From Trichosphaerium sp. ATCC 40318 (taxonomy: Eukaryota > Protista > Tubulinea): DNA of 64,000 nucleotides. Position numbers and translations under genes: made by a program. Location: positions 1 through 64,000 of the forward strand of contig JALMLS010000377.1 of the NCBI GenBank assembly GCA_038496445.1. Direction: 5' to 3'. Positions 146-62,570 of this stretch are shown here, piece by piece. The notes under the pieces are model-generated. The model did no database searches and had not been told where the DNA came from. It worked only from the letters and a program-made list of their open reading frames with translations. Every line of letters starts with the position of its first letter. The stretch's first letter is position 1.

Positions 146-2707
146 TTTAATTTTTAGACCTGAAGGCTGTGGTTTATCAGAATCTAAATAACATCAACTG
201 GTACATTGGTTTATGAAGAAAAAAAAAAAAAAATGAAAAAAAAAGGAAGGGAAAAACCAACACATCGCGATCGTGTTCGTACCGAGTACGATCGGTCTGT
301 GAGTTACTACACTTTCAAACCAAGGCTCACTTGATTTTTTGAACAACCCATGTGCTCTGCTGCTTCTTCTTGGTCTTTTTTGCAGCTGGATTTCTTCTGA
401 AACCTCATCCTCAACCTCATCCTCAACCTCATCCTCATTCTCATCTTCTTTTTCTTCAAAATCTTCTTCTTCATCTGATGTAGGAGGAGTTGTTTTAACC
501 ATAGGCTTCTTTTTCTTGCCTTTGCCTTTACCTTTTTTTTTATGCCTGTTTATGGCACTGCCTTCACTTGCCCTTGCATTGGCAGTGTTCTTGGCCCTTG
601 TATCTCTAAAAGGTAAGTAGGCATTCTCCAACATGGCTTCTAACTGAGGAGCTACAAAGGACATTAGTTTAAAAGTAAACTAGGGGAGAGAAAAAAAAAA
701 AAAAGAAAAAGAAAAGAGTACGACCGCTACGTTCGACGAACAGGCGATTCGCGTGTAGCGCCGAGCGCGACATTGGATGTGTAGTGTAAAAAAAAAAAAA
801 AATGACACTTACTTGCTTCCTCCACCTCAGGCAAATCCAAGCACTGCATAGACAACAGGGCAGTGTGAGAGAAGGAGAGCACCGTTGCTGCTTGCTTGTA
901 CTTCATCTCTTCTATAACCATCTTGGGCAATTTTTGGCCATCTTCTGTGGTGCCGGTCCAAAGCAAGTGCAGGTCGTACATCAGAAGCTGGCGAAATATA
1001 CACGGACGCAGGCTGTTCGCGAAATTCACGTGCTCCTCCTCGGTGCTCGTGTCCCACGAGAGCTCGTACCAACCGAGCTCGTTCAGCTGTCTCAAGGCCT
1101 CGAGTTAAAGTTAGATGAGGGTGGAGGGAGAAGAAAAAAAAAAAAAACAACAAAAAAAAACAACAAAAAAAAACTGACCGATTGGTTTTTTTTTTTTTTG
1201 TACCTGTGTGATATATTGGCTGCAGTTCTTGTACCTCTGCAAATAATAAGATTGATTGGTCTCATGATACACCCTGCAGGTCAGTGCCTTGACAAACTAA
1301 ATGTACAAGTTAGGCACAAACCCTTTTTTCAAAAAAAAATATAAAAGGTACTTGACTTACTGCTATTCTGGCATGGAGAGGTAACTCTGCCCATGCAGCA
1401 TGAGCCAATATTCTAGTCCTGTAGCCCACTGGATGTTTGGTGTGCTATGATGAGAGTGTGAGTGAACGGCCGAAACTTTGTATGACCACACAAAATGCGT
1501 GTTCGAATAAAGACGAAAGCCTACGTACCACATTTTCAGCAGATGCAACCAATTCTGCTATCAGAGCACTGTCCAATGGCTCAAAAAACATGCCAGCCTT
1601 AACAAACTGCTTGCTTTCTTTCCAGTTGGTCACATATGGAAAGTATAGATTCATCTTAACCAAAAACTAAACAAAACAATCAGTTATAACATACAAATAA
1701 AAAAAAAATACAAACTAAAAATCGTCGGTTTTACAACAGAGTATTTTAGTGTTCGCACGCGACCGCGAGCTCGCGGTGCGATTTACGACACGCGAAACCT
1801 CTGTTTAAAAATACTTGCGAAAAAAAAAAAAAAAGATTAAAAAAAGATTAAAAAAAAACAACCCTCACCTCTTTCCATTGAGCAGGACTGAGCTGAGGTT
1901 TGACTCTGCTGGCTCCCCATATCGCAAAATTCACCTTACCTATATCTCCCGCCTCCGCTTGGTAATCGAAGACCTGGCCCGCGTCGTCGCACCACATCTT
2001 GAACAGGTGGCGGTAGCGATCCACCTTGGAGTCTGGAGTGGTCAGACTTTGCAGAAAGTTGATCTTGGTGCAGTAGATCGCTATCGCTTGCATCTTGGCG
2101 AAAGGATTTATCCACTCCACATTTTTGATTGCAAATTTGCAGGTTTTAGCTGCATTTTGTCTAAGGCAAACAAGTAAGAAACAATTGAACAATAAGGTAA
2201 GGAAAAGTAAAAAACCAGAAAAACAAAAAAAAGGTTCGTCGTTCGAGGTTTTTTTACGACAGGAAAATCTCGTGTTCGAACGTGACCGCGAGCTCGCGGT
2301 CGGTCAACCGACACGTAAAATACGTGTTCGAAAATATTCGCGAACGTACGCCAACTCTGTCAAAAGACAGTGTGCTCCATCTCCAACTCCAAAGCCAACA
2401 ATAGGGTCTGTATTGTATTCATCACACCAAACAATAGGCATAGGGCAAAGCACAAACCTTTTGGTGAAAGTTTCATAAATAGGCATCTTTTGTATAATGT
2501 TCCTGGGGTTGACTCCTCTGACATTCAAAAAACAAGCTATGTGTGACATGTCCAAGGGGCCTTTGTAAAATGAGGGCTTCTTCACTCTCAGATACTTCTT
2601 GTTGATAGAGTTGGCAGCAATCCCTCTTAGCAAGGCCTTTTTTATTGATGACTTTATGATGCAGCCATTCAATTTATTGGTGCCTGACTTCATGTAGCTA
2701 CATAAAA

Positions 2708-2756
<49 letters not shown>

Positions 2757-4768
2757 GACGACGTTCGTTTTCGAACACGTAAAACGCGTGTTAAATAAAT
2801 ATCGCGAAAATTGTTACTTACTCCACAAAGAGATGGAAATCTGAATCATTGCCAAAGCTCAAGGAATCTCTAAAATGGACCAAAAGAAGGGCAATGTAGT
2901 ACCAAGAATCTGTGACATGAAGTCCCATGGCTGTGTAGAATATGCCAGTCCAGAGTAGCACCTGCCAATACAACTGTCTCCACTTGCAGCTTATAATCCA
3001 TCCATTCCTCTCCTTCTCCTCTACCTTCGATTCCTCATCTCCGTGTTCTCTCGGCATGGGTTCGTGCTCCTTGTAATCTCTGGTGTAGTTGCCTTCGAAG
3101 TGCATCGGCTTCCACCACTTTTCTTCATCCGAGGAGTAGATTTTTTTGACATCTTCTATAAACTTCTGCAGTTGGTCTACTCCTTCAACAAATGGAAATC
3201 TCTCCTAAAGAAACAAATTAATTAATTTAAAAAAAAAACAAAAAAAAAAAAACTAAAAGCCGACGATTTTACAACAGGATATTTAAGTGTTCGTACACGA
3301 CCGCGAGCTCGCGGTCACACGTTCGACACATGAAAACTGTGTTATGAATACTTTAGGAAAAAAAATCAAAAAATAATCAAAAAAAAAAACAGAAAAAAAA
3401 AAAAAACAAAAAAAAAAAAACGAAATAAAACGAACACGGCCCGCGCGTGTATGTATCGGAAAACGTACCTTGAATGCTGCCTTCAGCTTGTTGTTAGGAG
3501 TTATTTGGGACTCCAACACATTATCAAAGCTGGCAGCAAAAAACCCATTTAGGCATCTCTTCATCCTCTTGATGGGCATGGTTTTAGCATAAACCAACTG
3601 GTTGGCTATGATAACACCTCTACATAGATAAATTAGTTGAAATGAATTAAAAATAAAAAAAAAAACAAAAAATAAAAAAAAAATATAAATGGCAGCTACG
3701 TTTATGAACATGTGCCGCGCGTGTTGCGTCGAACGCGAACTTTAATGGGTAAAAAAAAAAAAAATGGACAAAACAAAAAAAAAAACAAAAAAACAAAACA
3801 ACCAACTTACTCAAAACCAAAGATAACATCTCTGTGTTCTCCAATAAGGGTACCCACAATTTTTGTTTCAGTATTGTGGTTTCCATGACTGCTCACAATC
3901 ATCCAACCAGGGCTTGTTGGAGCTAAAAAGAGTATTAGAAGATGGCACATTAAATAAAAATACAAACACGTTTTTTTCGTGTGGAAAATATGACCTCGAG
4001 CTCGCGGTCGGAAACAAACACATTAAATACGTGTTATGTACACAACGACAAGCTTGCAGTCAGTTATAAAGCAAGACTTTTAAAAAAAACGGTTTTTTTA
4101 AAAAGTACACACTTTTTATGTGTACGAAAACCGACCGCGAGCTCGCAGTCATATACGAACACGTAAAAAACGTGTTATAAATCGTACAGCGAGCTTGTGG
4201 TCTGTAAAAAAAGCAAAACAACAAAAAAATAATTAAAAAAAAAGTACACAATTAAATTGTGTACAAAACCAACCGCCAACTAGCGCGACATGCGAACACG
4301 CTATATACGTGTTCTAATACCGCGATGGGCTCGCTGTTGAAAATTGAAGCAAAATAAAACAGTGTGAACCAAAACCAAACGAAAAACAACGCACACGCGT
4401 TCTGCGTGTTACGAAACCCCGTTTGAGTTTGGTTCTACCATGAGAAAAAAACCGCATGGTAACGGAAAAACCGTACACATGAAAACCGTGTACAAAACCG
4501 TCGGTTTTTTTCGAAAAATTTACTTGAAAAATTAACAAATTTAGGCTTTTAAAAAAACCATCTAAAAGCAAAAAAAACCCCTTTATTAGTCTTTAAAAAT
4601 TAAAATAAGACTAATAAAGGGGGTTTTAAAAAAAAAAGAGTAAAAAAAGAGGTTAGTACCTAGTTTTTTCTTCCTCCTGAGCTTAAGCTTGCCATCAGCT
4701 TCTTTGGAGGGCTCATCCTCATCAGAAAACTCAATGTTTATTAGAGAGAGGTCTTCATCTGAGCTCAT
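146..4768 (-). CDS. Gene A: multi-exon unknown protein with degenerate ParB/Srx-like motif and acidic/basic tail; paralogue of gene B; probably continues beyond the left edge
   Basis: ATG 4768 (MSSDEDLS). GT-AG introns at about 3923-4659, 3620-3810, 3206-3468, 2698-2821, 2161-2349, 1667-1868, 1445-1528, 1296-1360, 1100-1203, 652-812 and 184-282 splice into one open frame. Exons align with gene B, e.g. MSHIACFLNVRGVN vs MSDLVCFLPVRGFN and GFGVGDGAHCLL vs GFCLGDGSHGLL. Confidence 0.8.
1762..4338. repeat. Intronic A-type palindrome family GACCGCGAGCTCGCGGTC with companion ACACG-n-CGTGT
   Basis: Copies at 1762-1777 (16-bp core), 2284-2301, 3299-3316, 3992-4009 (1 mismatch) and 4133-4150 (1 mismatch); degenerate copies centred ~4052, 4193, 4279 and 4329. 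All lie in gene A introns. Intron 1 has a ~140-bp unit repeated three times (~3965-4340). Confidence 0.92.
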
Positions 4769-5423
4769 CCTTGATTTATGAAAAGTCAAAAAAGTAAAAT
4801 GAGGCTTTTTTTCCCCCAATAATCGCGTTGAGAAATAGACAGGAAAATTTCGTGTTTCGAAATGTGAATCGAAAATTTCGCCTGTTTAAAAAAAGTAAGA
4901 AAAAATGAGAATTTGACAGTTTGCAAGATTGTTGATGAGGTTCTGGGTTTGTAAAAAACCCTATCTTGCTGTAACCCTACAGGGAGATTGTATGTGCAAA
5001 AAACATAAAAAAAAAGCCAAAAAATCCAAAAAATTTTACAACAGGGTAGAGTAGTGTACAAAAAAATGTATTTTGTTCGGGTAAAAGTGGAATGTCTTTG
5101 TATATGAGTGTGTAACAAGCATGTGCATTGGTACAGTCATGGAAAGTCAAGGAACAAAGTTAGGATTTGTGAAAAAATCAGTTTTTTTCCTTATAATATA
5201 GTTTTGTATGTTTATAATTAATTACTAAACAAACAAATTTCTATGATATAAGTTTTTCTCTCCAATTCATTATATTTTTTGTACATTATTTTTTTAATAA
5301 AAGTTCAATATTCAAAAAAAACCAAAAAAAATGCCTAAGTCGAATCATAGTAACTTCATAACATAGTATTCTCTGTTATGAAAATATCGCGGACGACGAA
5401 CTTATTTTGACTTTGATTAATTG

Positions 5424-8400
5424 ATGAGAAGCACAGCAAGGCACATACAGCTAGCCTTGAAGACATCACACACTCAGGAAGCCTCAGGGAACAAAATGGC
5501 AGCTAAAGAGCTAAAAGATAAAATAGGTACTCAAATAAATTTAAAACCTTTAAAATTAAGCTTTTAAAATTAATTTAAGGCTAATAAGCCTAAAAGAAAT
5601 CAATTTGAAGAGTTTTTTGATTTTGAGAAATTTTATAGAATTCATTGAATGTTTACTTTTGCTGACTTAAGTTTTTATGTTATATATAACATATAATATT
5701 ATATTTTGACAACGGATCGGACCGATCCGTTAGTAAAACAAAATTTTTTTTGTTTTATATTTGGATCGGACCGATCCATCACCAAAATATTCTTTTTAAA
5801 TATATTTATATTTTATATATAAATTATAAAAATAATTTTTGATAGTTGGATCGGTCCGATCCGTTATCGAAATATATTTATTTTTGTTTCGTAAACGGAT
5901 CGGACCGATCCATTATCGAAATATATTTATTTTTGTTTCGTAAACGGATCGGACCGATCCATTTTCGAAATATATATTTGTTTGTTTCGTAAACGGATCG
6001 GTCCGATCCATTATCATAATATTATTTATTTTTTTTATATTTGATTTAATATCTTTATTAGGAGAGGGTTGGCTTTGTATTGCAAAAGAAGATCATTATG
6101 ACACTTCCAGAAAGCTACAAGAATATATAACTCAATATGGTGCTGTAGTGGATGGTAATGGTGAAAGATATGGGTTTATGTAAGTCAATACATTATAATA
6201 TATATACTCACTCATTTATAGTGAATATCACAAAGGTGCTACAGGTCTTTTTGCAAAATTGATGCCATGGAGTGTATTCGAGACCTTATTATGTAAATGT
6301 TTTGGTGAGACATTAGAGGAATTAGAGGTTAAAATTAAAGAGGACAAAAACTTTATTAATGATATAAGAGTAAGTATTACCATATCAGGCTATACTAATT
6401 GAGTTAGGCACACTTACCATTTCTTACAAATAACAAACAACCAATTGAATTTATAGATGCCATACAATCAGATTATAAAGCATCTCCAAAAAGGTGGTTT
6501 AACCCTGTTAAAAGAAAAGCAGCTGAGACAGATGAAGCCTTTTTTACACGATTTTCCAGAAGAAAGCACATTTGGAGTCTTCTAATCAAACTTGAACTAT
6601 TTCCAAAAGCTGTTGGTCTACAACTTGCTAATGGTAACCACTATAAAGGGTTTTTAATGAAATACTACAGAAAGTCTTTGATGATATCAACTATGAAAGA
6701 GACAGATAATTATCAAAAGTATGTATTAGTTTATTACAATTAGTTAATCTACTATAGGTATTTGATGACAACTGGCCCAAGTTGTTTTACATTACCTGAT
6801 AATTACCAAGAATTATTTGACGAAGATGATCATTTTATTGATATCAGTAATAAAACATACACACCGGCAGAAAAAGCAAAAAGTTTGACAGTTCCATCAA
6901 TGTCAGACCTTGTGTGCTTTTTACCAGTCAGAGGTTTTAATTTAGAGAACTTTTTATTACAAATGGCAGCAGCTACAGAAGCAAGTCCACCACACAATAG
7001 AAAAATATTATTGGTCGAAAGTGGCACTTTATATGTACCAGGTGGAAGGAAAGGAAAACCTCAAGTTCATCCTGGTTTTTGTCTTGGTGATGGCTCTCAT
7101 GGTTTACTAGCATCTTTATGGTACAAATACTCATACACAATAACTAATATTTATTTTAGTATTTTGAAAAAGGATTTTCAATTAAAAACTGTGGGTTGGT
7201 TGTCTGTGCGTGTGAGATTAAATAGCATTATATCCTTTTGTGCAGCATGGAACAAATTGGGACAGGCCACAAAAGATAGTCATCTTTTAGATAAAATGAT
7301 ATTTTGTTATGATAAATTTTGTGAACAGTATGGATTAGAAAAAGTACGATATCAATATAAATCATATCATTTAACTAAATGTAGAATGGCGATTTTTCTG
7401 TGACAAGAAAGTCTCCTAAAAAACCTGGTGTAACTTTTCAATCAGTAAGATTATTTTTATTTTCTATTGTACTAATAGTTTAGGTGTATAACTTTTGTGA
7501 TCTTGGAGTGTCAAACCTAGTAAGAACTCCCAGAGAGTTTAAATTGATTGTAAGAGGAGGGGCTTTTTTGCATGGTATAGATAAAGATCTTATTGAATTG
7601 ATGGGTTTACAAGCAACCTCAGTACAAATAGTTGCACATGCACATAACTACTAACTATCTCTATAGTTAAATAGACTGCCTACAGGCTTTAATCAAAGAT
7701 GGTTTGGAGATATATTTTGGGCTAAAGCTCCTAAAAGGATGAGAATAGCAGTACGTACAAAGTTCAAACATTAGCAAAACTAAATTTGTAATAAAATACG
7801 TGCTGTTTTATCAACGGATCGGACCGATCCGTTTACGTAATATATCTTATAATGTTTCGTCAACGGATCGGACCGATCCGTATACGTAATATATCTTATA
7901 ATGTTTCGCCAACGGATCGAACCGATCCGTTTACGTAATATATCTTTCTATGTTTTATTAACATGTCAAACTGATTTGTAGAAAAAAGTTAATATGTTGT
8001 ACTTATTAATATGTTTAGTTTTTAAAAGCTGTTGGAAATAGACAGTATACATGTGATCCCAAAGCTAAACAGAAGTTTAAACAATACATAAATGCAAAAA
8101 ACACACTAGAAGCTGTACAATTTTTTTCAATAACACAATATTAACATATATTTGTAGTTATGGGACTTTGTTAAAACACACTTGAAACAAGACCCTTTAA
8201 CACACAGAGATATCATGGCTTTAGATGATACAAATCACCTAAAAAGGCTATACACATTTGACCCCACCCTATTATTTCCTCCTGCAGAAGGTTGGCCACC
8301 AGCAAAAGATAAAGACCATCCTTTGGCTCAACAAAGAAAAAGCACAGAGGAATTAAACTATTCAAATGATTCAGTAACAGTGGCAATGGGTTATAATTGC

Positions 8401-9449
8401 TTACAAGCATATGACAGCTATTATTCTGAGCACAAGCATATTAGTATACACTTTCAATTTATAATATTAATACTAAATATATACTAGGAAAAACACTTCA
8501 TAGCAGAGTTATTGAAAATATGAAGAAATACAAGGAAAAAAAGCAGAAACAAACAAAGTCAGCTAGACAAAGCAGAAAACCATTAACTGACCATGAAAAA
8601 GCTGCTACATCTCATTGGAGCAAACATTATGGTAAAGACAAGACAACATTGGCAGGTAAAACATCATTTTATACATTTAAATACATAACTATTTGTAGCC
8701 AAAGTAAAAGTATATGATAATTACTTAAAAGACAAAAAAGATTCTCATCAATCTAATAAATCCAGCGAAAATGCTGATATTGTTGTTGATGATGATGATG
8801 ATGTGGATATGCAAGATGTAAACACTTCAAGTTCAACAAAAAGAACCTCTACAAAGGCACAAAAAACATCAAGTAGAAAAACAAAACAGAAAGAGGAAGA
8901 AGATGAGTCATCTTCATCATCAACAGAACATGACAGAGAAGATAATGAATTTAATCCTTCAGATTCTGAACAAAACATTGATGATGTTTCAAAAAAAAAT
9001 ACAGATTCTATGTTTGAGCCATCTCAATCTAAAAATGTTGAAGAACAAATGACAATGGTTATAGATAAAATATTGGAAATTGGAGAATTTGTTTCTTATT
9101 CAAAACCAGAAGATTCAAATGTTGTGCAAATCACAATTGATGTACATCCTAGCAATGTTGCATATCAAAAACTTATTTCTAGTAAGTAATACAAAATATA
9201 TCCATATTTATAATATTAGGTACTCCTTTTATACAATCACAAAGGCAAATAGAACATACACCAAGTTATGATGAAAGTGAAAATGACAGTGAAAATGAAG
9301 ATGATGAAGAAGAAGAAGAAAAAGATGTGCAAAAAGGACCTGATATACAGCGAATATCTCCAAGGAAAACACAAAAAAAGAGAAAGCCTGGAAAACCACC
9401 AAAAGGCCAACCAACAAAGAAAAAAAGAAAAAGAATTGCAAAAAAATGA
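5424..9449 (+). CDS. Gene B: multi-exon unknown protein with degenerate ParB/Srx-like motif and acidic then basic C-terminal tail; transposon accessory gene
   Basis: ATG 5424. Introns at about 5527-6061, 6180-6221, 6370-6408, 6719-6757, 7121-7159, 7344-7385, 7445-7483, 7622-7666, 7751-8018, 8115-8157, 8444-8487, 8656-8698 and 9185-9219 give a continuous frame to TGA 9447-9449 (…KKKRKRIAKK*). Confidence 0.82.
5711..6010. repeat. B-type palindrome array 1 (6 x GGATCGGWCCGATCC) in gene B intron 1
   Basis: Cores start at 5714, 5763, 5848, 5897, 5946 and 5995, giving spacings 49, 85, 49, 49, 49. Confidence 0.95.
7813..7931. repeat. B-type palindrome array 2 (3 copies, 49-bp period) in the gene B intron at 7751-8018
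   Basis: Cores start at 7816, 7865 and 7914 (the last has one mismatch). The spacer differs from array 1 but the period is again 49. Confidence 0.95.
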
Positions 9450-9515
9450 ACACAGTATATGAAGATGTGATATATTTTGTTAGTTAGAAAAATTAAAATA
9501 AAATTTATTTACTTT

Positions 9516-12474
9516 TTACACATGATGTACTCTGTTTTCTATATCTGGTCCTCCAATAAATGCTGTTTGATCATCATTTGTATTTTCCATTTCTCTAATA
9601 ATAGCATCTTCATCTACATCCATGTTGGAATTGTGCTTTAGAATATCACTTATTGTAGGTTGTTCTTCATATCCATCAATTGTGTATTGTTCTCTATGAA
9701 ACAAATTCCATAAATCATTCTCTGGTGGTGGAGTATAGACTGTATCTGTTCTACCTTTAGGTGGACGACTGGCAGGCTTAGGATACAATGTAGTGGGACT
9801 TGTTGTATCTAGTTGAAATTGGCGTGCAAGACTGTATATATCCCAAGCTTTGTTTGGTTTAAGTACTCGTTTGTTTACAACCATTTGTTTTGTATCTTCA
9901 TCAAATGTAGAATAAGTGCAAGGCAAGTTGCTGAAAAAAACCAATGGTGTATTTTTTGCTCTACTGTTGTGCATATCAAAGATATGTTTTTTTGCTCCTA
10001 TTGCTATTTCTGATGTAGCTACCATGTGCACCTTGCCATTGGTTCCTTTTAAAATCCTATGGGGAAAAAACATGTAAGTTATACACTTTAACAGAATGCA
10101 TACATTATTTCTGCCATTCCTCTTAAGTGTAGTGCTTTTTTATTGCCTTCAGTATCTTTACTTGGTGTTCTCCATCTTTTAATGAAAGGTTTGATATTTT
10201 TAAATTCAGGTTGTTTCATTTCTACTCCACTCACATTTTCAGGTGCATTATATAAATCATGTATGTGTTGCATAGTAGTAAGCTCCCTGTACATGAAGTT
10301 AATCTTTTTTAACAATACAATTGTATGTAAAAATATACCTTGTGGATGATGCTAGCCTGACAGTGGCAAAAGCACGATCATTAGGCAAAAATGTATGGCC
10401 AATTCGTAAATACCTCAAAGTTACAGATAGAAACATATTTCTATCAACAAGCTCGCAATAAAACTTTATCAGCTCCCAACATTTGTTTTGAGCTGTGCAA
10501 TTATCAGACCACATCACCAAGTGCCTTTTTTTATTCTTTATGGACATAAGATGCTTGTAAATCACAGAAATAGTTTGATGCGCCTTTTTTTCTCCTATAT
10601 ATTCAGACCAATAATAGATTGTAGTTTGTTTTGTGCTAGCATCATAGATGCCAAGTGGATTTATTGATAGTGACCTAAGCTCTCAAAATTAGTCTTATGA
10701 TTGTAACTTTATAATACTTTTTTGTACCTCAAATAAAATTGTATCTGTGGTTGGTCTTTAAACTTTGGCATGCTTGTCATTTGCATATAATCTATTGACA
10801 ACACTGTGGATGTGGCTCTTTTCCAAGTCTCATACAAATGCCAAGTATCATAGTAACGTGGATTAAAAAGGCCAATATTTTTTGTTGTGTGAAATGAAGG
10901 CTCACTTTCATATCCCTCCCAACTTACTAAATATCGAACATCTGTAATTTTACGCTTTTTTCTTCTTTTTCTTAGTGGAGGGGCCTTTCGTTTTTTAGTA
11001 TTACTTTGTGGTAAAATTGAGTGTTGATCAATCTCTGTTCTGGTGTGCACAGTCATACCCAATATGCCATTTATGAAATACTCTTTGTTTTCATCTTCTA
11101 TTGTACCATATTGCCAGCCTACTGGATTGTTATACCAATCTGCATGTCCATTTGTTTTAATTGCACTTTTCCAATAACTTTCTAACTCTATAATATCTTT
11201 CACATTTTGTTTCATATATAACAGTGCAGGTAGTTTTAATTTAGTTTGAGTTTCTTCATCAGTGTGTTTTAATTCTTCTCCCATATCAAAACGCATAAAT
11301 TCAGTACGTCTTGTTGCTATTGCATGGTGTATAAACTGTCGTTCTTTTAAAGCTTTTCTTTGTTGGATAGTTATTGTTCTGTCTGCATATTTGCATTTAT
11401 ACCAAAAACAAATGTTACATGCATCTTCTCGAGGTTTTTTGAATTTAAACACACCTTTTGTATATTCCATAAAATATCTACAATAAAAATAAACTTTACA
11501 ACAATCATCAATAAATACCTGTGAAATGTACTATATGAAAGTACATTATTGTTTGGATCAATGTTTGGATAATTTTCCATATCTTCTTCAGCAGGCATTG
11601 CTTTGTGCCAGTTATTTTCCTTGATTAAATTTTTGTACATAATTGTTTCAGTAAGACCTACTGAAAAATACCAGTATGTTTTATAATTTGCCAAAGCATA
11701 ATGACTTTTTTGTACTCTGTGTTTTTTTATGAAGGTATGTATTGTTTTTATCATAGTAGCACTTTTTCTAAATATTTTATAAGTTTAGACAACAAAAAAC
11801 AGAATGTTATATAGACGGATCGGTCCGATCCGTTAACGAAACATACAATATATTGTTATGACAAATATTTATTGTAAGCTTATAAGTGATGGATCGGTCC
11901 GATCCGTATACATAACAGATGATGCGTAGTTACTTCAATCAAACGAGTACCTATTTGATTTATTATTGTGATAGCCTCTTTTATCTTCAACAAATCCTAG
12001 TTTTTCTGTTCTAAACTTATTGATTGAATGCAATGGCCCATGACTTATGCCATATACACTTTTAAAAAAAGAACAACATACTTTTTGTTTAGTGCCATTT
12101 CCATAAAATATATAATAATTATTTGATGTTTTTCCCTCTTTTTGATATATCCCTCTGTTCAAAATACCAATTTTATCCTTATAACTACCAGCAAAGTAAT
12201 AAATAGCTTTTAAAGCATATAAGTAATCTTTGTCAAATTTGCTCCAACATTGTCCATTACATTTACATCTATGTATCTTTTTTTCCATGAATTTTTCCCA
12301 ATTTTCATCAGTACATTTTTCTGGTTTAATCACTTCTTTGAAATCTACACACAATGTTTCATTTTCTGCTTGTTTTGAAATTAATTGACTTTCATTGAAT
12401 ATTCCTGGATTTGTCCCCCACTCTTTAATGCTCTCAATAGCTTCTTCAGCTAAAGGAAAGTCTTTTAAATACAT
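9516..12474 (-). CDS. Gene C: Sola-like DDD cut-and-paste transposase with an internal chromodomain
   Basis: Spliced frame (introns about 11768-11950, 11478-11518, 10675-10727, 10304-10360, 10058-10103) gives KVCCSFFKSVYGIS, DKRGYH, KSHY, KFKKPREDACNIC, SIDYMQ, WSDNCTAQNK and YLRIGHTFLPNDRAF. I recall this motif series from Sola1-type transposases. No stops or frameshifts seen. Confidence 0.85.
11815..11908. repeat. B-type palindrome pair in transposase intron 1
   Basis: GGATCGGTCCGATCC starts at 11817 and 11891. Confidence 0.95.
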
Positions 12475-12687
12475 TTCAATGGTAAGATGCTGTCATGCTG
12501 GTTGTTGAAAAGTATGTTATTAAGTTTGACATTACTTAATTGCCTCAAATTTTCGAAAATACCAAAACAGTTTATATTGTGTTATACTAGTAATACATAT
12601 GCTCAAAAAAATTTTATTTCATTTTTACCCGAAAGTTTCTCAAATACGGTTGGTACATACTCCTAAACTCTAAATCCTAATTGGCTT

Positions 12688-12933
12688 CTAGGGTATAAAC
12701 CCTAATCATTATTTTAATCTATTAGGGCTAGGGTTTTGTGCTCTATTGAATCTTAAATTAGGGTTAGGGTTATAACCCTAATGATTAGACAGATTAGTTT
12801 GGATTAGGGCTAGGGTTAGGTTTACAACCCTAACTATTGTTAAAAGTTAGACGATGATTAGGGCTAGGGTTAGGGCAAGGTTCAGTAATCAGCAAACCCT
12901 AATTTACATTAGGGCTAGGGTTATGCTTTAGGG
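12688..12933. repeat. Interrupted telomere-like (T/C)TAGGG repeats mixed with inverted AACCCTA
   Basis: ATTAGGGCTAGGGTT-type blocks at ~12721, 12757, 12803, 12857 and 12908, alternating with AACCCTA(A) at ~12698, 12774, 12826 and 12895. Confidence 0.85.
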
Positions 12934-13250
12934 ATAGGAATAGTTCTGAGATATCTTGTACTATGTTTTTGAACCTTACTTTCTTTCATGTCTACTTAGA
13001 TATTTTTACTGTATTTATGTACTATTATTTCAACATTGATGATTGTACAATAAATGGTTTACATATTATCACTTTAACTAAATGTTTGTATTTCACTATG
13101 GTATACATTTATGTACTTTATCTATTACATGTTATGCAAACCACAGCGTTATGTACATATTAAATTTTACTATTTACTTGTATTTACACAGCATACACGA
13201 TACAAAACAGCCACCAATAAATATTAATTAAACATAGCACTTATGAGCTT

Positions 13251-16200
13251 TTAAACAAATGACACACTGAGTAATCTGCCTTGATTACTAATGGAAACGC
13301 TTGTTTGCCTTGATGCACGCAGTCTTTTTTTTGTTCTTCCATGACCTGGGAAACCAAGTGCCTGTACAGGACTGAGTATTTTTATAATAACCAACAACAA
13401 AAACCCATACCACAGGATTTCATAATCTGCTAGACTTATGTTATTCTCTTTGAAAAACGCAACAACTTTATGTTGCTCAGCAGTGCCGTTAGCCTTCGTA
13501 CATTATCAGAACAAGAACACCATTTGAAATTAAACAACTGCAAAGCTTACCTGTAGCGTGGATGTACCATTATACAAATTTTTGGACAATCCATGCACTG
13601 GCAGTGAGCTTTCAGACTTGACACGTGTAAATCTAATGCGCCTAGGCAAAGAACTACTTGGCATGTGTGAAAATTTGGTTGTAGGTTGTGGGCTACGGAA
13701 AGGTTGTGCAAGCTAAGTAACCATAAGTAAGCCAAGTAAACAAAAAAAAAAAAAAGAAGGGTGCCATGGTAAACGCACTAAAGTTTGTTGTAGGTGGCTA
13801 GTGGCAGAGTCACTGTAGTGTCCAGTATCTGAGGCATCGCTCCTATCACTCATTGTGCCATCGCTGCTTTCACTATCCACGTCATCTTCATAATTTTGCT
13901 CGATCAACACAGCATGGTAAAACAAGTAAACCACCATAGAGAATGCAAAAAGTGTTGTGTGTATAAATGCAAGAAATGTTTCGTCAGATTGCCAAAGACC
14001 TTTATAAGTAGTTACGACATTGTGCTCACTGTGCCAAACCCCGCTTTGCATACCTTTTCGCTTTTGAGCTAACACACAACACAGCGCCAATGGACCACTG
14101 CCTCCGTACTCTGGCGCAAAGAGTGTTCCATTATCCAGATTAAGAATGCTGCATAGTGATTGTATTCGCACAGAAGAGCTGGGTTCAGTATCGGAGGGAT
14201 AGCCAATAATTTTATACTTTGCTATCTCAAGTACTCTATTTAAACAAAAGACGATCACTAAAAGGCAAAGTAGTGGCAATATACACGCACGTGGGTTTGT
14301 ACTTTATCCACGGTACACACACCGAATTTCCGCTCACAAGAAGCGACAATCCACGCACAGCATCAATCACTTGCCTAGGTTACTGTAAACGCGACAGCCG
14401 CAACCCAAAAAGAAAAAAAAAAAAGATAAAGCGGTAAATCTGTCAGCGTACTGGTTTGGTTCACTGTCGTGCATAGCACCCTTCACTACAAGCACACGTC
14501 CTTTGAGCACAGTGTATAAAATATGTTTTGTAAAACTAGGAGGGTACTGTGCAAGTAGCGCCATCAAGCATGCCGCTTTACTTTTCCCATAAAGTGTCTC
14601 TTCTGCATCTGTACTTGCTGCTGATAACCCATCTTGAGTGAACAGGGAATCACATAAGGAACTTGGATGCTTGTTGTCCAAGAAATATCGCGGATTGGCA
14701 GCAAAATTCAAAAATGCAGAATGGTGCTCTACGCGAGTATTGAAGTTAATGACACCAACATCGCCCATTACCATCAAACTAGATCTGGGTACTGAACAGT
14801 TTCGTTAAGAAAACTTACGCCATCTACTGAAGAAAGAAAAAAAAAAAGCCGAGTGGGTTAAGAGGCAAAAAAGCAAGTTAGCAGTTAGGGTTAGGGGGCA
14901 GGATACTAAGTTGAATCCTATCCAACGTTAAGGCACGTAAATGATCAATGTGCTTAGAAAAATGCGTAGTGAGTTGCTCCAGCTGGCTCATCGCCAATTC
15001 CCAAGTATTATCACCCATCAGTTGTACTACTGAGCGTAATGTACGCTCATAAATACTGCGTTTTTGTAGTGAGTGAATAGGCCTCGGCTATTGGAAAGTT
15101 AAATGTAAACACCTAAGCATTGCCGACAGGTACAGAAAATAATTTAATTGAAAAAAAAAAAAATAATGATAATGTTCAAAGATAGCAAGCAGTACCTTGT
15201 AATGATTTAACTCAGGGAACATTTGAAACACTGTATATTTTATCTCTTGTAACTCTTCAGCAATGGTGCGTACTGATTTAGGGCGCCGAGATAATCGTTT
15301 GTGGTGGTGAAGATAATAAAGCACGAGCTTATATAGTTCAATGTAATCCCTTGCCTTTTCATTAAGTTGTTCTACCGTGACAACAGGCAGTTGTGTTGGA
15401 TTCTGAGATGGTGAACCACAAAAAGGACTGTGCGTTGACAGTGTCCCTTCATCATCAGATTGGTCAAGTTCGCCAAAGTGTTCCAAGCTATACTGCAAAT
15501 CCAACAGCGCTTTTACAATGTCTTTCGCAAAATGATCAAGGTTCGCCTTCTTAATAACATCAGATACCCATAAGAATGATTTGTTCATCGCCAGGTAAGT
15601 GTCCATGAGCTTGGTTTCGCTTCTAGTGACAAACGCAAATGCGACAGGTCGTACATAACCACGTGCTATTTTCAAAAAAAAAGCATTAATAATAAAAGGT
15701 GATTAACATTTCGAAAATAAAATTAATTCAAGAAATTTCGTGGCTGCCGCACGCCTACACGCATACACTGCTTGGCGCTCAGCCGAAAAATTATTCAAAT
15801 TCAAGTGGTGGCTCCTCGTAATCCCGACAAAAAAAAAAAGGGTGACGTGTACCTTGAACATCGTACAAGTTAATGTGGTGAGTATAAGTGTACGCCGTAA
15901 AGTCTAGACTGAGCGTTAGTCCACTTTATTTCCGGGTCCACAGAATTTAAATCAAAAATTGGCTTACTCTTTTGAGGAACGGCCATCACAGCACTCCAAT
16001 CCTTGCTGGGGATGGGGTCTTCAGGATTGGCATCAACCGACATAATTCTGAACAATGGTAAGGATGACACTTAGCTGTAGAAAAAGAGCCAAAAAAAAAA
16101 AAAAAAAAATAGGTACTTTAACGCAAATCGGTCTATGGGGAATGTACCCGCAGCATCCTTGTTTGGTATTACCTACTGCCACAATTAACATTTAAAAAAA

Positions 16201-48433: not shown

Positions 48434-50781
48434 ATGAGTGTACATAAACAGCCTATTGGCAAAGCATCATCACAATACTCTTCTCAAGGGATACTTGACG
48501 CATCTCTGGTTCCTGGTTCTCCACTCGGTGATGAGCCATTGTATTATATAGAACAGATTGTAGACCACAAAATTAAGGTAATGGTTTCACTGTAGACACT
48601 TTGGCGAAAAAAAAAATCTCTTGGCAATCCGTTTGTTCAAAAAAAAAAAGATTTTTTGGCTAACTATCGGTGTACCTGCAGAATGCGAAGAGGGAATTTT
48701 TGGTAAAGTGGTGGCGGTCTTCCTGTAAAGAGTGGGTTGTAGAGGATAATTTCCATGGCAAAATACCAGATGTTTCGTTTCTATCAAAGGTACGTTTCCT
48801 TTTTCTTTCGGTTACGTGCGTTACTTTGATTGGCTCCTATTAACGTATATAACAGTCAACAAAGCGGAAAAGCACGGACGCGCCAGAAGCTACACGGCGG
48901 TCCAAACGACAGCGGCGAATAGCTGCACCAATACACAGAGAAGACGAATATAACGGTAATTACTTTGGGTTTTTAAAGCGTGACGCGAAATCACAAAACA
49001 AATGGAAACACAAGAATTTTTTCTTATTTTCATTTTTGATCAAAAAAAAAAAAACATGACACTCACACTTCACTTTCTTACTGATTGAATAGATCCAATG
49101 GATCTAGAACCAACATATACACGAAGATCGTACAATCGCCGTTTTACCTTCTACAAGACGTTTACTTTGTTATAGACAACGTAGCAAGACATTAAATCGA
49201 TCAGTGGACTATGGTGACGATAGTGACGAGGATTCTAGTTCAGGTCTGCCTCTTTGACATCTACAATCTATTCACTCCTATTCCCAGATTTTGCCAAGAA
49301 TGAAGCGCGGTTATCAAAGTCTAAAAGTACAACGAGGAGGAAACCTAAAAAGCGAACTGTATCTAAGAAAAGTCCTACTGGTTATACAATGATTGAAGCA
49401 GCGTTACTATGCCTTGAGGGAGAGGTAAGCACTCATTAAACATTCTTTTGTTTCTCCGCAACTCCTCAGTCGCACACACGTTATTAACGACAATGCGATA
49501 TCCTTATAAAAACGTCTCTGTCCTTTCTAGATGGTCTATGAGATTGTATTTTAAAGGAATTTTTTTTGCAAAGAGTACAACACCCTTTTGTACCGTATAG
49601 CTGTACTTGCTCTTTGTTTTTACCATTAATTCCAAAACAAGGGAAGAGAAATGCATGCAAGAGAAATAGCAAAGGTTTGTATTCAAGAAGGATGGATTAA
49701 CAAAACTAAAACACCACACAATTCAATCACAGCTGCTCTGAATGGACACATCAAAAAACATGGCCAAAAATCGTCCTTTATAAAAGCAGGACCAAACATT
49801 TTTGCTCTTTCTCCGCTGCATAAGCGCAAGATGAAAAGTAAGCAGTTGAAGACTGCTAAAACAGGGAAAGGCGGTTCAAGTACAAAAGGATCTAAAAAGA
49901 AGGCTACTGTACTGGATGATGATGGCGAATTCTCTGTTCCTGGTGTAAAACCAGATAAAAAAAGTGCGGCTAAGGCCACAAGAAAACACTCAAGGCGAAA
50001 AGTGGCGTCTCCTATTACAAACAAAAAATCAAATTCTAGAGTTGGGTTAAAGGATACAAAGACTGATTCGACGTTTCCAGGCTTCAAAATATCAAGTAAT
50101 GGTGTTTCACCTAGGACGACAAGGTCTTCGCGCATTCAGTCGCGCACTACGCGCTCTACTGTAGCTAATAGTGCGATGGCAAAGGCTAAAGTTTCTAATA
50201 ATATGCTTCCTACGCATTCCCTGACAAATGGTACAAATGGTGGTATTTCTTCTCAACGCGCTCCGTATTCGAGTTCTCTGTCATCTTCTTTTTATCGAGA
50301 CGCTGCAGATACAAATTTTCCATCACATCCGCCGGTAGGAGCGGAAATTAAGATAACTGAACCGCCTCCCGAGTTAGGCTTTAATAATTTTAATGGATCC
50401 TTTTTGGACCAACCCTTTGATCAACAAATGGCTCAAGAAATAGGAGACCTTAGTTACGCAGCAGGTATAGGATCTATGTTCTCCATACAACCGATTTACT
50501 AGTTTTTTTTAGATATACCAACTTTTAAACGTGAAATATGCCTTGGTCTTGGCTGTGGCGTCTTGGTTGAATATCCATGTGAAGCTCAATTAATTCAGGT
50601 ATTTGTTTTAACTTGTAAACAAATGAGCATGAAGCTGATGTGTTTTCTTTTTTTTTAGTGTCGTCAGTGCGGCACAGTCATGGAGATTGATACTGCATCT
50701 GGGAGCCTAGTAATGACTAGTCCAAATCATAATACTCACAAACACTCGATGATAGATATGCATCCGTCGCTGGGAATATAG
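48434..50781 (+). CDS. Chromatin protein: chromo-like domain, HARE-HTH (ASXL-type winged helix) and C-terminal Cys4 zinc ribbon
   Basis: YYIEQIVDHK…EFLVKW; TMIEAALLCL…MHAREI…KTPHNSITAALNGHI…FIKAGPNIFAL; CLGLGC…CRQC. Confidence 0.75.
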
Positions 50782-61750: not shown

Positions 61751-62570
61751 ATGGATAGTACATCAGCTAAATCATTAGTGGAACGTGGCTATGTGCTACT
61801 AAACATGCCACAATCGCTGAAACAGGCATATTTAGAAACGCTAACGTCAATGAAGGCGTTTTTTGGGTTGAGCGATATAGAGAAGGCGAAATTCAACGGT
61901 GTAGGCACAATTCAGGATTTAGGTTACCAAATAGCACCAAATCGAAAAGAACATTTTATGGTACGTCCAGCATCTCAAACAAACGCTCACGACGCTCTAG
62001 ATGCGTTTGAGCGGCACAAACAAGCACATGCCATTCCCAACAATAGACAAAGTTGATGTTGGCAATCAACTATCAGAACTATTCTCGCTATTCGATGCTT
62101 TTGGCCGTGACGTATTGCAAGAGGTTACACATTACCTTGAATTACCAAGCAGCGAAGTAAGTGAACAGATGAAGCACGTACTAGATCCTACAACAGACAA
62201 ATTACCGCCAAAATATGTTAGTAGTTCGATGCTAGATGTATTTCATTACTTTAACAATGACAGTAACACTGTAATAAGTGTCAATACTGGTCCTCACAGT
62301 GATTCAAGTATCATTACTATAATACCCATCGCTGAACAAGAAGGTCTAGAAATCTATGACGTACCAACTCGCACGTGGGTGTCTATCGAGAAAGACGGAA
62401 TCCATGGCGAGCAGCTTGTTGTGCTTATAGGAGATTCCGCTGACTCACTTACAAAGGGCGTGCTGAAGACTACTCTTCATCGTGTTTCCAAATCAACAAA
62501 GCCTCGCTTCTCCATCACGTACAAATTGCGCGCTAGGCCTGCAGGTGAAAGCTCCCTCCCTTGTAGTTGA
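61751..62570 (+). CDS. 2OG-Fe(II) oxygenase (IPNS/DIOX-like)
   Basis: HSD…GLEI…IGDS…HRV…RFS; one intron at about 61961-62000. Confidence 0.88.

Follow-up and report, generated by a model that had tools for sequence, protein, structure and literature searches.

Gene organization and encoded proteins

The analysed window, i.e. the whole stretch of 64 kb, contains three neighbouring genes here called A, B and C, the models of which were built by hand from the continuity of open frames and from GT-AG introns, all introns being predicted from the sequence. Gene A (157-4768, minus strand) comprises 12 exons and encodes 789 amino acids. It is arranged head-to-head with gene B (5496-9449, plus strand), an intact gene with 14 exons for 899 amino acids, which in turn converges with the likewise intact gene C (9516-12474, minus strand; 860 amino acids, 6 exons), leaving a spacer of 66 nt between them. 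Together, B and C probably form a compact and intact two-gene DNA transposon. The introns of gene A vary between 64 and 737 nt, show T-runs and appear host-like, and most of them harbour CpG-dense modules. Among the introns of B and C only three are long, and every one of them carries an array of palindromes, while the remaining 15 measure 38-53 nt. Hence, the long introns of B and C (3/3) appear to exist because of the palindrome arrays.

The proteins A and B share 23-24% identical residues (BLASTP: 23% over 526 amino acids, E 1e-24), and 10 of the 11 introns of A coincide with B introns, in each case with identical phase. In both genes the largest array is situated in the first intron, and this intron position is homologous. 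Judged from these sequence features, A and B are true distant paralogues, as the initial annotation had claimed for the head-to-head pair. Gene A would then go back to an old duplication of the accessory gene and have since turned host-like in composition and intron style; it may either belong to an older second element with its partner outside the window or represent a retained or domesticated copy.

The 195-amino-acid core of B was compared by phmmer with 1.84 billion representative proteins, which revealed no relatives; the single match was a repeat protein and was discarded as spurious. Likewise, no match was obtained in a word-index search with exon 5 of A, in a scan of metagenomes with an A/B profile, or for A and B in Pfam, NCBIfam, PDB sequences and the ESM Atlas, so that neither a DNA-binding nor any other domain was found in these collections. 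Two AlphaFold models for A/B reached pLDDT values of 39 and 37, which are too low to use. Hence, A and B look, in the parts covered by these searches, like an orphan family that has no detectable relatives or known domain. The C-terminal tail of B is acidic/basic and includes NLS-like runs, and we tentatively regard B as a nuclear-looking accessory protein of this orphan family.

Gene C is better connected. Its exon 4 matches the Pfam family PF25273 (DUF7869) with E 7e-13 and 49 bits (cut-off 26), which is the sole above-threshold Pfam match of C, and its neighbours in the ESM Atlas are eukaryotic DUF7869 clusters. Because of this domain, the predicted protein is read as a DDE/D-type transposase. 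A viral scan with exon 4 and word-index searches with exons 3 and 4 gave no match. By eye, we noted SIDYMQ, WSDNC and LPNDRAF as candidates for acidic motifs, which follow each other in the order expected of a DDD core.

Two palindromes confined to introns

Two different CpG-rich palindromes were found at the locus. The A palindrome GACCGCGAGCTCGCGGTC comprises 18 nt and is present in five good copies and one decayed copy. When up to two mismatches are allowed, it is found five times in the 64-kb window (at 1761, 2284, 3299, 3992 and 4133), where 0 matches are expected. The copies at 2284..2301 (A intron 5, in the centre of an approximately 80-nt foldback module) and at 3299..3316 (A intron 3) are perfect, the copy at 1761..1778 (A intron 6) has one mismatch, and tandem modules extend over 3992..4202 in A intron 1, in which the copies at 3992 and 4133 (one mismatch each) are accompanied by the decayed sixth copy at 4185. 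The changes in this sixth copy are CpG-to-TpG changes, which indicates that unprotected copies do decay.

The B palindrome GGATCGGWCCGATCC comprises 15 nt and has 11 matches in the same window compared to 0.01 expected. Six copies, mostly spaced with a 49-nt period, form a first array at 5714..6009 that fills B intron 1 (5527-6061, 535 nt); three copies with the 49-nt period form a second array at 7816..7928 in B intron 9 (7751-8018, 268 nt); and two copies (11817 and 11891, 74 nt apart, spanning 11817..11905) lie in C intron 1 (11768-11950, 183 nt). Within one array the repeat units are 89-93% alike.

On the present gene models all palindromes are intronic, i.e. they occur in A introns 1, 3, 5 and 6, B introns 1 and 9 and C intron 1. 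The chance of finding seven independent locations all in introns, in a region that consists of approximately 30% intron, is estimated at roughly 2e-4. Neither palindrome, nor an isolated half-site of either, was found elsewhere in the 64-kb window, including the 51 kb of host DNA around the locus. The initial annotation had assigned a separate, intron-confined palindrome to each of the paralogues and the B palindrome to the partner of B, and both statements hold: all 5 A and 11 B matches are intronic, and C contains two copies of the B palindrome in its intron 1 and none of the A palindrome. Since C shares its motif with B and not with A, the motif is a label of the whole element and not of a single gene, in agreement with the proposed element specificity of the palindromes.

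Outside the window, three metagenome contigs carry two B palindromes 30-60 nt apart; they are GC-rich, contain the motif inside coding-like tandem repeats and show no similarity to the window, and were therefore rejected as chance matches. The A palindrome was detected in viral contigs as six single occurrences, one per contig, which were set aside as probable chance matches too.

Conservation and CpG landscape of the arrays

The comparison between arrays revealed a sharp contrast between the palindrome cores and their surroundings. For the B palindrome, the core is 95% identical between arrays and the flanks 54%; for the A palindrome, the core is 93% identical and the flanks approximately 40% when compared ungapped (65% mean column identity when aligned). 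A similar contrast exists for CpG dinucleotides. The observed/expected (o/e) ratio of CpG is 0.31, 0.12 and 0.23 in the exons of A, B and C, respectively, and 0.94 in host DNA. The short introns have ratios of 0-0.2 and the transposon exons show an excess of TpG/CpA, whereas the palindrome-bearing introns reach 2.1-3.0 (A introns 2.27). Across the 11 B copies, 21 of the 22 core CpGs are intact. Thus, the palindrome introns represent CpG islands within CpG-decayed genes, which fits a methylation-related role. CpG ratios above 1 reflect selection for CpG; they do not tell which process uses the CpG. We consider it highly probable that the palindromes are selected cis sites under constraint.

One could argue that the arrays are neutral minisatellites or foldback/MITE-like repeats, which expanded by chance in these introns. 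The similarity of 89-93% among units of one array is indeed typical for young tandem expansions, selfish repeats often take the shape of palindromic foldbacks, and the B 15-mer is also present in unrelated metagenome contigs. However, the conserved cores amid diverged flanks, the retention of core CpGs while the CpGs in the rest of the element have dropped to o/e ratios of 0.1-0.2, the 0 copies in the 51 kb of host DNA that complete the window and the recurrence of one motif in three different introns, distributed over two genes of a single element, make such neutral expansion very unlikely.

A role at the RNA level must also be weighed, in which the excised introns fold into hairpins that give rise to element-specific small RNAs or control splicing and expression; such hairpins could serve self-limiting copy-number control or act as trigger or decoy for host RNA silencing. 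The arrays offer suitable structures. The B palindromes extend to 19-35 nt and neighbouring ones pair as perfect stems of 19-24 bp (fold z -7 to -8), the pair in C intron 1 folds as single strands into a hairpin of approximately 105 nt (z -7), and the A palindrome extends to an approximately 80-nt foldback with nested stems. All A modules have the same orientation relative to the gene, and Rfam returned only miRNA-precursor-like matches, all of them below threshold and of the kind that any hairpin would give. Nevertheless, net covariation does not support the stems (term +0.84), the mutated copies show single, uncompensated changes, conservation peaks at a short core instead of the whole stems, and a hairpin function alone leaves the CpG enrichment unexplained. 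An RNA-level role therefore appears quite improbable. The foldback extension and the stems of 19-24 bp would serve an RNA structure or a cruciform just as well as a site for a protein.

Furthermore, a host protein, such as one sensitive to CpG or to methylation, might recognize the arrays as intronic enhancers or CpG islands, by which the transposon would secure its expression. Their promoter-proximal, first-intron and CpG-island-like character is what such an explanation would predict. Yet the motifs of A and of B/C are unrelated to each other and each is absent from the host genes in the window, and we give recognition by a host factor a very low probability. A tie to CACGTG, a palindrome abundant throughout the host, was rejected, since it occurs 0 times in B/C and once in gene A, outside the palindrome introns; this scarcity implies that the elements do not use the host-favoured motif.

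Candidate ends of the element

The transposon had been described as Sola-like. This label has the DUF7869 match in C as its only basis, and neither a terminal inverted repeat (TIR) nor a target-site duplication was established. The best candidate for a left TIR, a weak one, is the sequence at 5076..5093 (plus strand), which agrees in 16 of 18 bases with the reverse complement of 12616-12633; no target-site duplication was seen at this inverted pair (5076/12633). The motif TAGGGTT, which may represent a subterminal repeat of the B/C element, is found twice at 4957..4979 (minus strand) to the left of gene B and ten times, in both orientations (TAGGGTT/AACCCTA), at 12698..12922 upstream of gene C. 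Hence, 12 of the 14 TAGGGTT sites in the window flank the B/C unit.

Many transposases bind repeated subterminal motifs. Accordingly, the arrays could be sites of the transposases, i.e. of C and of the unseen counterpart belonging to A, and promote, like those of Ac, P and En/Spm, the assembly of the transpososome from a subterminal position, with the accessory protein being otherwise employed. In fact, the array of B intron 1 and that of C intron 1 are placed like mirror images, approximately 640-930 and 730-820 nt from the candidate ends 5076 and 12633, and the N-terminal exon of C is, by eye, cysteine-rich and HTH-like. However, the third array lies in the middle of the element (B intron 9), the A copies are spread over four introns and 2.4 kb, the candidate termini bear neither palindrome copies nor half-sites, and the places where subterminal repeats are expected, outside both genes, are occupied by clusters of another motif, TAGGGTT. 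We thus regard sites for the transposase as an unlikely explanation of the arrays.

A proposed role for the palindrome arrays

Our favoured reading is that the palindromes are selected, element-specific cis sites to which an element-encoded protein binds, VANC-like in logic, and we rate it as a whole at somewhat less than an even chance. The palindromes would be cis-acting sites under selection that are specific to each element and that sit in introns because a compact element has no other non-coding room, with the largest arrays in first introns, near the promoters. The CpG decay in the other parts of the genes would be the footprint of cytosine methylation directed at transposons. The arrays would be occupied by a dimeric DNA-binding protein that the element itself encodes, for which a protein of the accessory A/B type is a likelier candidate than the transposase. 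The occupied promoter-proximal DNA would stay unmethylated and the element would remain expressed or mobile, as proposed by analogy to the action of VANC on VANDAL.

The steps of this proposal differ in strength. The chances that the sites are bound by an element-encoded protein appear balanced; that A and B are the binding proteins is possible and is put forward tentatively; and an anti-silencing role is rather doubtful at present. The proposed co-divergence of protein and site refers to two pairs only. In its most far-reaching form, the proposal says that an orphan A/B family on DUF7869/Sola-like transposons reads element-private CpG palindromes and thereby keeps its own intronic CpG islands unmethylated, a system that would be independent of VANC, convergent with it and co-diversifying; we consider this complete version unlikely.

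So far, the good evidence for transposon-encoded, sequence-specific counter-silencing comes mainly from VANDAL/VANC of Arabidopsis. If the proposal is true, VANC logic would exist in an unrelated type of transposon and host, which would point to a strategy that has arisen repeatedly; an accessory protein of orphan descent would be combined with private CpG palindromes stored in the introns of its own element, and the locus would offer a compact, testable protein-DNA recognition pair. Whatever the mechanism, CpG islands limited to the introns of CpG-decayed transposon genes are a measurable signature that can be searched in other genomes. A literature search for this layout of genes and palindromes found no paper describing it; new are the link between intron length and arrays, the core/flank contrast and the CpG-island introns in CpG-depleted genes.

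Comparison with known systems

The pairing of a protein with a multi-copy palindromic site of 15-18 bp resembles ParB-parS. Here, however, the system is a chromosomal eukaryotic transposon; searches of A/B for a ParB/Srx domain gave no match in Pfam (E<=5), NCBIfam (E<=1) or PDB sequences (E<=10), the unit consists of B and C only and has no ParA-type partner, and the scanned exons yielded no match to a P-loop ATPase family. In the course of this comparison, a GDGxH-like motif was noted by eye only.

The Sola superfamily of DNA transposons reportedly includes Sola1-3 (Bao et al. 2009). We know of no Sola element that comes with an accessory gene or with palindrome arrays in its introns, although a literature search cannot exclude one. 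A possible likeness of C to this superfamily would consist of its DUF7869 domain, which occurs in eukaryotic proteins, and the three acidic motif candidates in DDD order that were recognized by eye. As of 2017, Pfam included no model for Sola (PMC5751038).

CACTA/En-Spm elements and PIF/Harbinger elements are two-protein DNA transposons, as B and C would be. Their TnpA and Myb-like proteins, respectively, are non-catalytic and bind sequence-specifically to repeated motifs near the element ends, and TnpA also counters methylation of its element. Unlike these subterminal, non-intronic motifs, the arrays described here are intronic and lie 0.6-0.9 kb from the candidate ends, with one in the middle of the element. 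Moreover, in contrast to PIF/Harbinger, A and B yielded neither a Myb/SANT domain nor a DNA-binding domain of another known type.

VANDAL elements of Arabidopsis are Mutator-like transposons that come with anti-silencing proteins, the VANC proteins (Hosaka et al. 2017, PMC5735166; Sasaki et al. 2023, PMC10398659). The searches revealed no homology of A, B or C to VANC or to a Mutator-type transposase: neither A nor B matched a Pfam family, the searched region of B has no relatives, and DUF7869 takes the place of the Mutator-like type. The present system would therefore be an analogue and not a member of this group. Its host is a microbial eukaryote. The link to cytosine methylation was directly shown for VANC, whereas here it consists only of the pattern of CpG islands in CpG-depleted genes. 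The motifs differ as well: the VANC motifs quoted from PMC5735166 are 8-9 nt long, all point the same way and lack CpG, compared to perfect CpG palindromes of 15-18 nt inside longer foldbacks at the present locus. Nevertheless, the architecture claimed in the initial annotation is recognizable. An accessory gene adjoins a transposase gene, here B beside C and both intact; the motifs differ between related elements, as do the A and B palindromes; and short family-specific motifs are arrayed in tandem in non-coding DNA including the element's own introns, just as VANC-binding motifs form tandem repeats in introns of VANC21 and VANB21 (PMC5735166).

Gene models and paralogy

Gene models were built from open-frame continuity and GT-AG introns, so the introns are inferred from sequence. 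The orphan gene A (157-4768, minus strand) comprises 12 exons encoding 789 aa and introns of 64-737 nt, its paralogue gene B (5496-9449, plus strand), read as encoding a transposon accessory protein, 14 exons and 899 aa, and gene C (9516-12474, minus strand), the putative transposase gene convergent with B, 6 exons and 860 aa. The reading frame is intact in all three. Proteins A and B align with 23% identity across 526 residues (E 1e-24), and in the global alignment 10 of the 11 A introns lie at most 4 columns from a B intron of the same phase. The similarity together with the common intron positions and phases indicates that A and B are old paralogues, which inherited one gene structure; they stand head-to-head, as the initial annotation had proposed, with 727 nt between them.

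Most introns of B and C are very short (15 introns of 38-53 nt). Only three are long, and exactly these three hold palindromes: introns 1 and 9 of B, with 535 and 268 nt, and intron 1 of C, with 183 nt. The palindromes of A are located in its introns 1, 3, 5 and 6; hence, the claim of a separate palindrome for each gene, confined to introns, holds. Intron 1 is the only palindrome intron common to A and B and holds the largest array in each gene. In addition, A intron 1 contains a CpG-free inverted repeat of some 20 bp (4570-4628; CCCCTTTATTAGTCTT ... AAGACTAATAAAGGGG), which has no relation to the CpG palindromes.

Distribution of the palindromes

The 18-nt A palindrome GACCGCGAGCTCGCGGTC occurs five times at up to 2 mismatches, starting at 1761, 2284, 3299, 3992 and 4133 (0 expected), and a sixth copy at 4185 is decayed with CpG-to-TpG changes. 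The 15-nt B palindrome GGATCGGWCCGATCC was found 11 times versus 0.01 expected; B intron 1 holds six copies (5714-6009), B intron 9 three (7816-7928) and C intron 1 two (11817 and 11891). These motif counts confirm the palindrome positions reported initially, including the observation that C carries the B palindrome and not that of A, which is restricted to gene A. In a scan for perfect palindromes with arms of at least 7 nt, the first 12.8 kb held 18 of the 29 G+C-containing ones in the window, and neither family recurred in the other 51 kb; isolated half-sites of either palindrome are absent from the window. A third palindrome family without CpG was noticed at the window edge (1-150), just downstream of gene A, with three exact copies of GGTATATACC and one further copy with a mismatch of the AAGTGGTATATACCACTT type. 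It may be part of the 3' end of A's element.

Outside the locus, three GC-rich contigs (Ga0126327_10064958, Ga0126325_10132796 and Ga0126325_10193695) came up when metagenomes were scanned for paired B palindromes; in them, GGATCGGWCCGATCC lies within tandem repeats reading as coding (LLDRTDPLL...); they were dismissed as unrelated to the locus. The A palindrome was found in six viral contigs, once in each.

Repeat anatomy and conservation

The repeat unit of B measures 49 nt and is arranged in tandem; its 15-nt core can be extended to a palindrome of 19-21 nt (ACGGATCGGWCCGATCCGT) and, less strictly, to one of about 33 nt. The A modules, approximately 80-140 nt long, are centred on the 18-nt palindrome, which is flanked on either side by ACACG...CGTGT hairpins, and all of them share one orientation. 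All seven ACACG-N(2-10)-CGTGT hairpins of the window lie inside A introns (2311-4409) and represent a second A-private motif beside the main palindrome. Comparison between arrays gave 95% identity for the B core against 54% for its flanks. For A, the core reached 93%, and the flanks about 40% without gaps or 65% mean column identity once aligned. This contrast between core and flank, the survival of CpG in a decaying background and the sharing of a single motif by three introns from two genes argue for functional sites. The palindromes are thus probably functional, element-private cis sites, and neutral minisatellites are improbable.

It is also rather unlikely that the arrays act at the RNA level, via hairpins or small RNAs. 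Single-stranded folding predicts that adjacent B palindromes form stems of 19-24 bp with z-scores of -7 to -8, and RNAalifold returned a nested foldback, but found no net covariation support. Mutated palindrome copies carry single, uncompensated changes, and a search of Rfam gave only miRNA-like matches, all sub-threshold.

CpG landscape

Beyond the initial annotation, our analysis uncovered a peculiar CpG landscape. The CpG observed/expected ratio is 0.31 in the exons of A, 0.12 in those of B and 0.23 in those of C, and 0-0.2 in the short introns of B and C, compared to 0.94 in host DNA (the remaining window) and 0.91 in host ORFs, while the palindrome-bearing introns reach 2.1-3.0. The exons of A, B and C are enriched in TpG and CpA (1.3-1.45 versus 1.12-1.19 in host DNA). 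Loss of CpG with an excess of TpG/CpA is what deamination typically leaves behind where cytosine methylation has targeted transposons. Against the decayed background of the three genes, the palindrome arrays are CpG islands, and across the 11 B copies all but one of the 22 core CpGs are intact; this pattern fits a methylation-related role. Depletion (0.26-0.62 at 12500-14000) also reaches about 1 kb past gene C into the adjoining DNA, which, judged from base composition, looks like a halo of spreading methylation.

A host factor could likewise read such CpG-rich arrays. The palindrome CACGTG, abundant in the host (0.55 per kb), is missing from the B/C unit and occurs once in gene A, outside the palindrome introns; hence, the A and B motifs are not part of a genome-wide CACGTG phenomenon, and we give a host reader little credence.

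Element boundaries and host setting

The B/C unit lies in an AT-rich, CpG-poor block from about 4900 to about 13250, with 31-33% G+C and introns of 38-53 nt, whereas host genes of the window have 38-42% G+C and longer introns with A/T runs. Gene A is host-like in both G+C and its T-run introns, yet its exons are CpG-depleted. B/C could therefore be a recent arrival, possibly via horizontal transfer, and A a long resident; a possible transposon partner of A would lie left of the window. The best inverted pair for candidate B/C ends, at 5076 and 12633, agrees in 16 of 18 positions and lacks a visible target duplication. Twelve of the 14 TAGGGTT motifs of the window flank the unit, two on the left (4957-4979) and ten on the right (12698-12922); these TAGGGTT/AACCCTA motifs are telomere-like and partly palindromic, e.g. 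TTAGGGTTATAACCCTAA. Binding of the intronic arrays by the putative transposase, whose own gene carries two B copies, is a minor possibility, since the TAGGGTT clusters make more plausible subterminal repeats than the palindromes in the introns.

In the host region, the ORF at 49651-50502 encodes a HARE-HTH domain (E 1e-8), and that at 62001-62570 a 2OG-Fe(II) oxygenase domain (E 1e-11). Both domains are frequently linked to DNA modification.

Proteins A, B and C

Proteins A and B had no match in Pfam, NCBIfam, PDB sequences or the ESM Atlas, and nothing was found with an A/B profile in the metagenome scan or with word-index searches. For the best-conserved 195 residues of B, no true relative was found among 1.84 billion representative proteins; the single match, a low-complexity repeat protein, was not accepted. 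Two AlphaFold models of the A/B proteins reached pLDDT values of 39 and 37. A GDGxH-like motif visible by eye is the sole hint toward ParB/Srx. Both proteins have a C-terminal tail of low complexity that combines acidic and basic residues with NLS-like runs.

Exon 4 of gene C matches Pfam DUF7869 (E 7e-13, 49 bits, cut-off 26), and its ESM Atlas neighbours are eukaryotic DUF7869 clusters. Three acidic motifs, recognised by eye, follow the order expected of a DDD core, and the name 'Sola-like' is plausible for the element; Sola had no Pfam model in 2017 (PMC5751038). Ahead of the first catalytic motif, exon 3 (10870-11083) encodes a stretch resembling a chromodomain by eye (VRYLVSWEGYESEP...), with no Pfam chromodomain match at E up to 1.

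Comparison with known systems

Among the candidate readers of the palindromes, we favour the accessory protein, in analogy to VANC, TnpA and the Harbinger Myb-like proteins. The initial annotation had interpreted the locus as an element-specific recognition system in which protein and site co-diverged. Its element-private cis sites are supported by the core/flank contrast and CpG survival, while the interpretation as a whole is unproven; co-divergence would be read from two protein-site pairs. The closest documented system is VANDAL/VANC of Arabidopsis, Mutator-like transposons with an anti-silencing protein that binds family-specific motifs, which occur as tandem repeats within introns of genes carried by the element itself (PMC5735166). 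Intronic tandem-repeat motifs are thus common to VANDAL and the B/C arrays, and the A/B system would be analogous, not homologous, to VANC.
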